NCBI GenBank assembly: GCA_020536535.1
Contig: JAHLWZ010000682.1
Location: forward strand, 1-64,000
DNA length: 64,000 nt
Source of the DNA: Pelomyxa schiedti
Lineage: Eukaryota > Protista > Evosea
Reading direction: 5' to 3'
The notes beneath the pieces were generated by a model. That model did not search any database. It was not told the origin of the DNA and worked only from the letters and a program-made list of their open reading frames with translations. The translations under genes were made by a program, and so were the position numbers. Below are positions 30,349 through 33,926 of this stretch, piece by piece (the stretch's first letter is position 1; the number at the start of each line of letters is the position of its first letter).

Positions 30349-30645
30349 TTTCGATTGAATCTACAACAAGAAGAAAGTGCCTGCTGTGATGATGGTTTTT
30401 TGTTTCTTCCCGGTGCCTTTTTTACGGGTGTTTGCTGTGAGCACAAATTCAGAGGTGTTTACCGTAAGAAAGTGCACTAGGCAAAGGAAGATTGCGTCTT
30501 ATGAAGGTAACATAACGTTGGGAGTTGACCTCATCGTTTTGCTCCTTGCTTTGGGGGTGGCGACACCACACCCCGAGTGCAGCAGGTTTTTCACATTGTT
30601 TTGACTGGATCTCCACCCACTGATCCAGAAAAACAAAGACTCCGT

Positions 30646-32480
30646 TCACAGAGCCACGTTGTCAAAGATGAAGAAGTCGAACTCCGAAGAGGGCTGCCGG
30701 TCGACGACGAGGAGCTGGTTTGTTGACGAGATCCACGATGTCAGCAGCACGCAGGTGCCGGAAGTCGGGAGTGTGTTTCTGTAAGTGCCATCATAAACAC
30801 CAGTCGCGGTGTCATACACCCCATTGATCTTCCTGCTGTTGTGTGCCTTTCCAAAGTAGAACTTCCCACACACAACAAATGCAAAGCCTGTCTTCCTCTT
30901 GACGCGTGGCACCACCCACGTCTGCAAGATCGCGAGGGAGTCGGGGTCCACCCTCGTGATGTGTGTGTTGCCGTTGTTGGGTGGTGCGTGCACCACAAAC
31001 AGCACACCCCCAGCGTCGACATGCCAGCAAATATCCGTGTACCCACCCCAGCTCCACGACGATTGGTTTGCGACGCCGGCGTTGGGGAGTGGTGCAGTTG
31101 CCACTGTCGATCCATCACTCACACGCACCTTGGTCATGGTGGCGGCGTCGCGAGGGTTGCAGTACACGTGGCCGTTGTGCACTGCCTGGCAGGTGCCGCC
31201 GGGGCTGCCGGGCAAGTCCTTGAGTGTGAATTGTCTTGGGTTGGTGTTGCTGATGAAGCTGGTCATGCTTTCGAATTCTGAGAGTTCCTTACGATTGTAG
31301 TTGGAATCCCAGTACACTTTCCCGGTTGCGTTGTCGACAAACACCCTGAGTGCCTGGCGAGGTGTGATGGAGGGCACCATCGACGTGCCAAGCTGTTTGA
31401 GCGTCCTCGCCGTCGTTGTTGCGGGTGTTGTTGCCTTTGTTGTCACTGACGTCAGTGAACTCGATGCTGAATTGTGAACAAGTTTTCCCAGCGAAGAGAC
31501 TGCACCACAAACAGCAGCTGATTCGCACTCAAGGCTCACCTTTGGGTTGTTGTCATCAGACACGGTTTTTTTGGGGATATATATATATATATATGGGATG
31601 AACAGTTTTAAAGAATTTCATTGCCAAACATGCCTTCAGTTTCTGTGGAGTTGCAAGATCATCACGGGATTTGCATACACTCTCAATCTGTGCTGTGAGT
31701 GCTTGATTCACTGAAACAACCTCGACATCGGAGAACAGTGTCGTTGCTTGATGTGCATATTCCTGTGCCTCTTGTGCGATCTTCAACCTCCGATCGCATC
31801 CCTCGATGTGCTCTTGGAACGTCTTCAAAGTTGTTTTTTTTTGGTTTTTTTTTTTTTTTTTGGTGTCAGTGAAATTGAGAAAAAGGGCAACTCTTGCCTT
31901 GTTGGCGGCTTCGTTGATTGTTTTCAGTTCAGAGAGCAATTGTGCCTCTCTGGCATTGACAGCACCAACGATCTTGGCAAATTCAGATCTTATTTCTGCC
32001 CCGATTTTATCTGTGGCTGCTTGTGCATTTTTGCGACACTCCTTTTTGTTTTTTTTTGGTTTTAATACCGATATCGTTTACTTGAACAGGATTGATTGGG
32101 CTTCGCACAATTGCCGTGATTTTGGAATTTGTGACTTGCTCCAAGTGCGACGCCAAATTGGAACAGGTCGAGGCAATCTTCTCCTTGAACTTGGAGCTCA
32201 GGTCGGTGACAAAAACCAAGTCGTGGTTCTTGTGCTCAATCAGCCTGATGATAAATTTTGGTTTTTTTTCAAAAAGATCGAAAGAGAGNNNNNNNNNNNN
32301 NNNNNNNNNNNNNNNNNNNNNNNNNNNNNNNNNNNNNNNNNNNNNNNNNNNNNNNNNNNNNNNNNNNNNNNNNNNNNNNNNNNNNNNNCATGAAGTGTGG
32401 CCACTTTCTTCTCTGGCATTTTTTCGCTTCTCCTGACCTTCCTTATTCCTTGCATAGATTTTCTCCAGACGCTTGGCGGT
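30646..32480 (-). CDS. B-box/coiled-coil protein with a C-terminal olfactomedin (OLF) domain; the 5' part is interrupted by the N-gap
   Basis: OLF motifs GTCQAVHNGHVY, LPNAG..WSWGGYTDI..VDAGG, ITRVDPDSLAILQTW, FAFVVCG. Upstream exons give a B-box end (EHKNHDLVFV) and a TRIM-like coiled coil (IRSEFAKIVGAVNAREAQLLSEL). Confidence 0.72.
32289..32388. other. Assembly gap (100 N)
   Basis: A run of exactly 100 N, a scaffold placeholder. Confidence 1.
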
Positions 32481-32708
32481 AGTCATTACCTCTTCAAACT
32501 CCTTGAACTGTATATTTATTCTCACATAGAAATCCATCACACCTCGCCACAAGAAACAATAAACAATCGGGATCAATGTTCATTGTTGTATATATCTCAA
32601 ACAAACAATGAAAAAATGCAGTAACAAACTCTTGTGTGTGACACTTCCCACTTTTTATTCCCTTTCAATTCACATTTAGCTCATCGGCATTCATCGACAC
32701 AACGCAGT

Positions 32709-33926
32709 TCAGACTTCTTGGGTGTCATCCTCACTCAGCTCGATGCGGAACGTGATGACGGGTGGCAGGGCAGTGATGTGGGTCACGTGGAATACACCGG
32801 TCCAGCAGAAGCTGTGGAAACGAAACTTGGTGGTCTGCATCTTGAGTGTCTTGCCGGCCTTGGTTTGCAGGTTCGAAGTTACCTGTGTTGGAGTGATTCC
32901 TAAGCCAAGAAAAGAAGAGGTGTAGTACATTAACTTGCATCTGCTGTCCATTGAAATCGGGATTGCGAGACTTTATTTTGACCCAGACCCGGTACTCGTT
33001 CACGTGGTCGTACTCCCACAATGTATACGCCAGAGTGGGGCCCCAGTCCCCAAGCACACCCTCACTCACTATGGCTCCTCCAATATCAGTGTGAATAGTA
33101 ACATTGACCAGCATCGCTAATCCATCTGACGAGGTAGACGCTGTCCCAGCGGCAATAGCAGGAGTTGTCGTAGATTCATCTGGGGAATGTTATGTTGTGC
33201 AAAGTTATTGTCTTATCACAATTACCTTGTTCCTTGGGGCTTGATTCCTTTGGGATACTGGGAATGCTGCTGCCGCGCACCGGTGAGGCCGACGCCGATA
33301 CTGTAGTAGAGGAAGTTGATGAAGCAGAGGGAGGCACAGGAACGCCGTCGCTTTCGCTGCCGTTGTTGTCGCCACGCGAGGGCTTCGTAAGTGCAGCGGC
33401 CGATGTAGTCGTAGTCGCAGTTTCTTTATGCGCTCGCCCGCCGTGGTTTTCTACGATTTCTTCTTCGGCACAATCGCTTTGGACGGCCCCCTCAGTCTCC
33501 TGCTCCTCGTCGTCGTCTTCATCTTCATCGTTGTCACCAAGAAGCATCGCCGTGAACTCATTGCACTTAGCGCACCTGTGTCCACATGTATTGGTGCACC
33601 TGTGGCCGCACTCGCTCCGCAACATCCGGATCTAGATCTCGGTGTTTGGTTGTAGTGTGGTTGTGGCTTTGTTTTTTCCCATTTGATACTTGAGGCACCT
33701 TTTTCTGCCAGCAACACGGGTGACGTTTCACCTTCCAACATTTTTTGAGCATTTTTTTTTTTAATTCTTTTCTGAAGAGAACATCGGTCTTGGTGAGCTG
33801 TGTGGCATCGATGTGGGCGCAGGATGTGAGACCAACCTGGGCATCACCATTACTCATCAATCTGTCAGATTCGTTTGTCGTCTCCCAGATTTCCGTGATC
33901 CTGGTTTTCGGCGAATGGAAACACAC
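32709..33926 (-). CDS. Hypothetical spliced protein with a Cys/His-rich segment and an acidic/Ser-rich linker
   Basis: CGHRCTNTCGHRCAKC, DNDEDEDDDEEQE, and beta-strand-like downstream exons with GT-AG boundaries. No family recognised. Confidence 0.4.

Follow-up and report, generated by a model that had tools for sequence, protein, structure and literature searches.

Described TRIM and OLF systems

TRIM proteins are classed by their C-terminal domain, which may be SPRY, NHL, filamin, MATH, ARF, or PHD-bromodomain; to our knowledge, the olfactomedin (OLF) domain is not among these classes, and we know of no description of an OLF propeller so far other than outside cells. Here we analysed a 64,000-nucleotide (nt) stretch of the genome of Pelomyxa schiedti, an anaerobic amoeba (assembly GCA_020536535.1, contig JAHLWZ010000682.1, positions 1 to 64,000; hereafter the window), in which a gene on the minus strand joins coiled-coil exons to an OLF exon. 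The 453 codons found in the window are likely to be the 3′ part of a P. schiedti family gene for a cytosolic ubiquitin ligase of the TRIM type, with a RING, B-box, and coiled-coil (RBCC) module and a C-terminal OLF propeller that binds the target.

Several described systems resemble this arrangement in part. The TRIM-NHL proteins (TRIM71/LIN-41, TRIM2, and TRIM3) likewise place a RING, one or more B-boxes, and a coiled coil before a C-terminal beta-propeller that gives target specificity; however, the NHL propeller is six-bladed, whereas that of Pelomyxa is a five-bladed OLF (PF02191), and the Pelomyxa proteins lack a filamin domain and come from an amoebozoan host. The best match of the N-terminal module is TRIM28/KAP1 (TIF1 family, PDB 6H3A), with a collinear RING, B-box 1, B-box 2, and coiled coil, but TRIM28 ends in a PHD-bromodomain and acts as a nuclear corepressor and SUMO/ubiquitin ligase, whereas the Pelomyxa proteins end in OLF. 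The animal OLF proteins (noelin/olfactomedin-1, myocilin, latrophilins, and gliomedin) share the family, the fold, and the cysteine of 'F[IV][IV]CG', and noelin and myocilin also have a coiled coil before their C-terminal OLF. However, the animal proteins are secreted or exposed at the cell surface, have coiled coils of a type other than that of TRIMs, and mostly bind Ca2+ via Asp, Asn/Glu, and Asp, where Pelomyxa has C, F, and S; the Pelomyxa OLFs also fall outside their clade. Bacterial OLF lipoproteins, for example MSP62909.1 (Stig1-like repeats and OLF), are the closest OLFs outside Pelomyxa and belong to the same clade, but they carry lipoprotein-type signals and cysteine-rich extracellular repeats and have no RING, B-box, or coiled coil. 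In the BTB-BACK-Kelch (KLHL) cullin-3 adaptors and in BTB-BACK-OLF proteins, a propeller also occupies the substrate-receptor slot of a ubiquitin-ligase component; the latter proteins (from Mataza, and P0020) have an OLF of the same clade as Pelomyxa, but BTB-BACK instead of RBCC, and Mataza belongs to Rhizaria.

Outside animals, only the TRIM37-like RING-B-box-MATH type is widespread (Marin 2012, PMC3503706), and Dictyostelium is reported to have one TRIM (PMC5758549). In Pelomyxa, an apparent two-B-box RBCC module, alignable with human TRIM28 over its whole length, is multiplied about 20-fold. RBCC-OLF sequences are already public under automatic names; the architecture was not found described in the literature, and no paper was found on a fusion of OLF with TRIM or BTB modules (subscription journals were not covered). 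New for the window copy are an exon model based on RNA and the evidence that the gap in the assembly is a collapsed repeat and that the 92 nt upstream of it are outside the gene.

The OLF propeller and its relatives

The open reading frame (ORF) that contains the last exon of the gene (30646–31563, minus strand) matched PF02191 with an expectation value (E) of 1.1e-28 and a score of 101 bits (cut-off 23.9). In a search of PDB sequences, noelin was the best match (E = 5.6e-25), and myocilin and latrophilin were also matched. The last exon reads 'VSLECESAAVCG', followed by a Ser/Thr-rich linker of about 60 amino acids (aa) and then by the OLF propeller (Pfam match 30793–31329). The AlphaFold 2 (AF2) model of the exon product, built from a 32-row alignment, had a mean predicted local distance difference test (pLDDT) score of 81.6 and a predicted template modelling (pTM) score of 0.81; in this model, residues 1–60, the linker, are disordered, and residues 61–297 are confident and all-beta, with 19 strands over residues 65–293. 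On comparison with the PDB by Foldseek, the top matches were all OLF, with E down to 9e-20 and template modelling (TM) scores by target length of 0.75–0.81 for the best ten single-domain chains and 0.57–0.59 for the longer latrophilin chains. Exons were searched and folded singly, and the spliced join served only as a check of the frame and the stops. By profile and predicted fold, this exon encodes a five-bladed OLF propeller; the OLF propeller that an earlier note on this DNA, made from the letters alone, had proposed is real.

The earlier note had also claimed that the positions of the myocilin Ca2+ ligands D380 and N428 are substituted and had called this consistent with a Ca-independent cytosolic version. 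The substitutions were borne out by alignment with noelin and myocilin-type sequences, in which the window copy has C for D380 (GYTDIC) and F for N428 (GFAF) and, in addition, S for D478. Of six aligned family sequences, five have C and an aromatic residue at the D380 and N428 positions, and the sixth (P0003) has G and F; the bacterial lipoprotein relatives and the Mataza protein share this Cys and aromatic residue. Since these secreted bacterial relatives, with their lipoprotein-type signals, have the same residues, the loss of calcium ligands is an inherited trait of the clade and not a cytosolic adaptation, and this part of the claim had to be given up. Judged from the ligand residues, the propeller would bind without calcium. 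A central Ca2+ site is typical of the OLF family and not universal; gliomedin is without it. Two cysteines on the minus strand, one in 'AVCG' (~31506–31514), shortly ahead of the propeller, and one in 'FVVCG' (~30817–30831), are kept in nearly all Pelomyxa copies; in secreted animal OLFs, the cysteines at these positions pair in a disulfide. At the second position, the 'CG' cysteine of Pelomyxa and animals, Asn is found in the bacterial relatives.

An exhaustive HMMER search of 1.84 billion cluster representatives yielded 279 matches, and domain content was taken from the best 150 of these. All matches above 50% identity, of those looked up, were from Pelomyxa. The next ones (41–45% identity, E 1e-41 to 1e-48) were MSP62909.1, encoded by a Myxococcales metagenome-assembled genome, and proteins from metagenomes that bear Stig1-like cysteine repeats or N-termini resembling those of lipoproteins. 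Among the best 150 of the 279 matches, B-box and OLF occurred together only in the two Pelomyxa proteins, and BTB-BACK and OLF in two proteins, one from Mataza sp. D1 and one from Logan. The Mataza protein (P0018; cercozoan transcriptome, EukProt EP00462_P024806) is 605 aa long and the Logan protein (P0020) 561 aa; their OLF is found where cullin-3 adaptors have the Kelch propeller. When 115 OLF domains were placed in a quick maximum-likelihood tree (unrooted, most rows without taxon label), the Pelomyxa clade (support 100) was nested within a 20-row clade (Shimodaira–Hasegawa-like approximate likelihood ratio test, SH-aLRT, 96) together with bacterial-type and BTB-BACK proteins, and a separate 85-row clade contained the animal OLFs identified by name plus some bacterial-type proteins. 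On these sequence comparisons, the propeller is shown to belong to a non-animal OLF clade with bacterial lipoprotein OLFs and protist BTB-BACK-OLF; being unrooted and having few taxon labels, the tree identifies neither a donor nor the direction of any transfer.

We also compared the propeller of the window copy pairwise with those of eight paralogs. The ratio of nonsynonymous to synonymous substitution rates (dN/dS) was 0.27–0.59, with 0.59 for the sister copy (the closest paralog, see below), and the copies are therefore under constraint. The ratio was 0.31–0.84 in loops vs. 0.19–0.33 in strands, and the column entropy was 0.73 bits vs. 0.39 bits; differences between copies concentrate in loops.

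The TRIM-type front end and the assembly gap

The genome that was searched comprises 52,367,397 bases in 5337 contigs and has OLF-like matches at 29 places, 23 of which pass the Pfam cut-off. At least 10 OLF exons have a Pfam B-box match 750–950 nt upstream on the same strand; these matches cover profile positions 2–30 of 42, and the remainder is beyond an intron. One paralog, P0002 (KAH3745893.1, 644 aa, automatically named "TRIM71"), has RING, B-box, and OLF all above the Pfam cut-offs; its RING has all eight ligands and scores 21.7 bits on PF00097 (cut-off 21). Residues 19–293 of P0002 are collinear with the RBCC of human TRIM28 (PDB 6H3A, E = 3.3e-19), with the coiled coil extending to residue 293, and the next PDB sequence matches are TRIM3, TRIM2, MID1/2, and many other TRIMs. 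Four further paralogs were read, and they have the same order: a first exon with 'C-x-C-C', an intron, RING (second part 'LLPCLH..C..C...CP.CH'), B-box 1, B-box 2, coiled coil, and OLF. All paralogs that were read have the Cys/His pattern 'CxxC...WWCxxC...LCxxD..HH' of a putative B-box 1, which lines up with B-box 1 of TRIM28 and scores below the Pfam cut-offs (see below). B-box 2, which reads 'CRDCTLIDHKNHD' in spliced P0002 and aligns to B-box 2 of TRIM28, follows the pattern C-x2-H-x7-C-x7-C-x2-C-x4-H-x2-H and scores 26–44 bits on PF00643 in paralogs against a cut-off of 24.1 (above the cut-off in 3/3 paralogs tested from genomic DNA). As judged by these alignments, the N-terminal module of the paralogs appears to be a canonical two-B-box tripartite motif, and about 20 P. 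schiedti genes join a TRIM front end to an OLF propeller. The N-termini of the family read 'MEKRELIAQITCPCC...' (candidate first exons of the window copy) or near variants, e.g., 'MDKKEV...', and the RING begins at about residue 12; the family therefore has no signal peptide. Deposited P. schiedti proteins are named 'hypothetical protein Pelo_7241' and 'E3 ubiquitin-protein ligase TRIM71' (72–79% identity) and 'Olfactomedin-like domain' (55%). Genome-wide, Pfam gave 151 B-box matches with E of 10 or less, almost all of which passed the cut-off; a first look had yielded 309 candidates, and 150 were scored. In a non-animal with a 52-Mb genome, this B-box/TRIM-like expansion is very large. Only about 10 of the matches precede an OLF exon, so there must be other C-terminal domains as well.

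The exons of the window copy were defined by Logan contigs from four public runs of one study, mapped to 30400–33400. Two of the runs are single-cell RNA-Seq, one is of unrecorded type and also has spliced forms, and one (X1) provided DNA contigs. X2 record 12 spans the 31540–31633 junction and carries no letters of the sister copy; therefore, RNA is made from the window copy, and splicing joins its OLF exon to a coiled-coil exon. The 31822-to-31898 junction is joined in X3 record 19, and X4 record 23 ends there. The exon 31898–32041 is matched by X2 record 13 without any other letter and with splicing on the upstream side. X3 and X4 contigs leave the window match at 32244, the predicted acceptor, and run on as the exact reverse complement of the last letters of the B-box 2 exon, '...DKALICRDC'. 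Spliced together, the four exons in the window give a single open frame of 453 codons with one stop at its end, in which the OLF exon is an internal-phase exon. The three exons between 31634 and 32244 encode about 155 aa that carry the coiled coil, with a weak PML_CC hint in Pfam; their counterpart in P0002, including the segment that corresponds to exon 31898–32041, matches the coiled coil of TRIM28. Of B-box 2, the window holds just the final H-x2-H, i.e., the last two zinc ligands; Pfam gave no match on this B-box tail exon alone, which was recognised via the paralogs and the run-on letters of the read contigs. Two of the three introns within this model are GC-AG, and in the more distant paralogs L015, L016, and L017 the last intron starts with GT; GC-AG introns make up 1.59% of introns genome-wide (PMC8887013). 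Two other exon models were discarded: an early intron with donor at ~32070 and acceptor at ~32030 was replaced by the RNA-defined 32042–32108, and a different junction of the OLF exon, with a GT donor in 'GCATGTTTGG' and the acceptor 'GGTGCAG', was overruled by the RNA junction and the paralog 'ECES..CG'.

The window carries the 3′ two thirds of the gene, and the front end is concealed by an assembly gap of 100 Ns (N100; Table 1). The closest paralog of the window copy, here called the sister copy, lies on the same scaffold (C682:98319–99236) and has 91% protein identity. The piece with RING, B-box 1, and B-box 2 is present once in the assembly (C682:100160–100898). Two contigs, C1667 and C1348, both end in the first 121 nt of this piece, and each has its own upstream region and first exon 'MEKRELIAQITCPCCSSFLRDPR'; on the other side, the two downstream copies, i.e., the window copy and the sister copy, start with the same 121 nt, and the overlaps are exact. 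A single RING/B-box contig with two contigs leading in and two copies leading out is a collapsed repeat: two genes share an identical middle. The N100 gap of the sister copy is bordered by the same 121 nt twice and is therefore an unmerged overlap. C1667 and C1348 carry the first half of the RING ('CPCC'), and the collapsed contig carries the second. The RING and B-box exons of the window copy would thus be those at C682:100160–100898, with its first exon on C1667 or C1348. The DNA contigs agree with this arrangement. X1 record 6 covers 32010–32288 without mismatch and extends 809 nt further, through the intron into the B-box 2 exon; its first 30 letters past 32288 are the intron remainder and the end of the B-box 2 exon, as in the scaffold piece of the paralog. 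From the other side, DNA contigs enter the gap for 208 nt, with different letters; therefore, the gap stands for at least ~1 kb, and its two sides are not continuous.

The sequence beyond the gap is of another kind. Homology between the window copy and the sister copy starts exactly at the gap edge, 32288, and from 32389 onward no counterpart was found in the upstream region of any paralog; no contig of the mapped runs provided RNA over 32389–32621. Positions 32389–32509 are identical to the opening 121 nt of contig C2648; beyond these, that contig has unrelated sequence with a 'DTGADVS ... LGLDWL' motif, and further copies of this repeat are on C827 and C571 (86–90% identity). Pfam on C2648 gave a weak RVP_2 (retropepsin) hint alone (E = 0.066). 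The repeat is probably a remnant of a long terminal repeat (LTR) retroelement and the cause of the assembly break here. The repeat at 32389–32640 has a basic, coiled ORF ('FKEFEEVMTTAKRLEK...'), and on C2648 (1–1255) there is a retropepsin-like stretch interrupted by a stop. Candidate B-box cysteines directly upstream of the gap, in the frames of 32389–32620 (e.g., 'CLLFLVARCDGFLC'), were rejected, as this is a dispersed repeat with no paralog homology and no RNA, and Pfam on the pre-gap ORF gave nothing significant. The stretch 32389–32480 lies outside the gene.

These results bear on most of what the earlier note had said about the architecture. Its coiled coil and B-box end upstream of the OLF were recovered as TRIM-style coiled-coil exons and the tail 'LIEHKNHD', spliced in RNA, and its placing of the OLF in the C-terminal slot of a TRIM agrees with the domain order of the paralogs and the alignment of P0002 with TRIM28. 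Its intracellular reading likewise agrees with the family N-terminus. None of the three findings that it had named as speaking against itself (separate transcription of the OLF exon, a signal peptide, or a failed OLF profile) was made. Its span of 30646–32480 is correct up to 32288, and 32389–32480 must be removed from it. The B-box Cys residues and the RING, which it had suggested looking for by closing the gap, are not in the window; the run-on letters of the contigs do lead to the B-box 2 exon.

Table 1. Features of the TRIM-OLF gene and its 5′ border in the window
Feature	Coordinates	Strand	Description
Last exon	30646–31539	-	894 nt; stop 30646–30648; start fixed by RNA junction and paralog 'ECES..CG'
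Intron	31540–31633	-	94 nt; GC-AG (GCATGT...CAAAG); 94-nt skip in X2, X3, and X4
Coiled-coil exon	31634–31822	-	189 nt; '...TFQEHIEGCDRRLK...TPQKLK'; RNA contigs, open frame, and paralog homology
Intron	31823–31897	-	75 nt; GC-AG (GCAAGA...TGAAG); contains a 17-A run
Coiled-coil exon	31898–32041	-	144 nt; 'ECRKNAQAATDKIGAEIRSEFAKIV...EAANK'
Intron	32042–32108	-	67 nt; GT-AG (GTGCGA...AAAAG); 67-nt skip in X2 and X3
Exon	32109–32244	-	136 nt; phase 1; B-box 2 tail 'LIEHKNHD' and start of coiled coil
Intron remainder (B-box 2 exon to next exon)	32245–32288	-	last 44 nt; acceptor ...CATCAG
Assembly gap (N100)	32289–32388	.	marks collapsed repeat and repeat element, not a 100-nt hole
Start of dispersed repeat, outside the gene	32389–32640	-	continues on C2648 (121-nt overlap)

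Proposed mechanism, alternatives, and the neighbouring gene

By homology with TRIMs, the RING would recruit a charged ubiquitin-conjugating enzyme (E2), and the B-boxes and the coiled coil would give a dimeric scaffold. The OLF propeller, in the slot that NHL or SPRY occupies in animal TRIMs, may pick the target through its variable loops; proteins, RNA, glycans, and microbes are all conceivable as targets. Ligase activity, dimerisation, and cytosolic localisation would be expected of the family by analogy with described TRIMs. OLF biology would gain an intracellular, calcium-free, and experimentally tractable example. For TRIM biology, the expansion would allow one to ask, outside animals, if the scaffold generally lends itself to diversification of target binding. 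A role in sensing microbes or symbionts, though speculative, fits the copy number and the loop variation; TRIM5 and the fish finTRIM proteins are comparable sensors in vertebrates. A wider scenario is offered tentatively: a calcium-free, bacterial-like OLF may have been captured by a eukaryote and wired independently into two types of intracellular ubiquitin-ligase receptor, RBCC (Pelomyxa, Amoebozoa) and BTB-BACK (Mataza, Rhizaria), and the ~20 Pelomyxa copies, with their variable loops, may act as cell-autonomous sensors of microbes, symbionts, or viruses. If true, the extracellular OLFs of animals would be one branch of an older, generic ligand-binding propeller.

Several observations weigh against a complete, cytosolic TRIM-OLF protein from the window copy. 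The disulfide cysteine pair ('..VCG..' and 'FVVCG') is kept, which is unexpected in a cytosolic protein. The window itself has no RING and no B-box cysteine, and from genomic DNA both the split RING halves and B-box 1 fall below the Pfam cut-offs (for B-box 1, PF22586 15–21 bits and PF00643 17 bits). The link to the collapsed contig relies on de Bruijn contigs, which are able to switch between 94%-identical paralogs. The remaining two observations, on a repeat and on one RNA contig, also favour an alternative, namely that the window copy is 5′-truncated or interrupted by a repeat or retroelement upstream of 32288, so that it would encode at most a coiled-coil-OLF protein, and only the sister copy (C682:98319–100898) would be a full TRIM-OLF gene. 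In the scaffold, the repeat flank 32389–32640 (continued on C2648) adjoins the gap directly on its upstream side, and an insertion that severed the 5′ exons is possible. X2 record 13, which has the letters of the window copy over 31898–32040, continues into an upstream exon that differs at 9 letters, leaving the 32244 acceptor unused. The presence of only one RING/B-box contig in the assembly also fits truncation. However, X1 record 6 is mismatch-free over 32010–32288, where the sister copy differs at at least two places, and yet continues 809 nt into the B-box 2 exon. In addition, two first-exon contigs (C1667 and C1348) feed the single RING/B-box contig, as from two complete genes, and the window copy is transcribed and spliced and has a dN/dS of 0.59 to its sister. 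We therefore regard truncation as unlikely and prefer a complete TRIM-OLF gene.

Even for a complete gene, the propeller might not select substrates but bind RNA, as the NHL propeller of TRIM71 does, or serve as a scaffold or assembly module. TRIM-NHL propellers bind RNA, TRIM2 and TRIM3 are among the RBCC sequence matches, and the GenBank pipeline named a paralog TRIM71. However, we know of no OLF domain that binds RNA. According to PDB titles, OLF domains occur in protein complexes, i.e., latrophilin with FLRT and teneurin, and noelin with the N-terminal domain of the AMPA receptor, and the variation between the Pelomyxa copies lies in the loops, as expected of diversified ligand binding. 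A role other than target selection is therefore improbable, and target binding by the propeller is the preferred reading. Contamination with OLF sequences of an animal or of the bacterial partners of the amoeba, or an assembly chimera, is hardly credible: the genome does come from amplified single cells with prokaryotic symbionts (PMC8887013, PMC10579272) and the nearest OLF relatives are bacterial, but the OLF exon is spliced to the TRIM exons by spliceosomal introns in RNA contigs, at least 23 copies lie on many contigs among amoeba genes, and the best bacterial match has just 45% identity.

Upstream of the repeat is a neighbouring gene (32709–33625, minus strand) with a Cys/His-rich start ('CGHRCTNTCGHRCAKC') and an acidic, Ser/Thr-rich middle; Pfam gave no match on the ORF tested. 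RNA contigs define two 46-nt GT-AG introns in it (skips 32879/32926 and 33179/33226), and its RNA reaches down to 32642.

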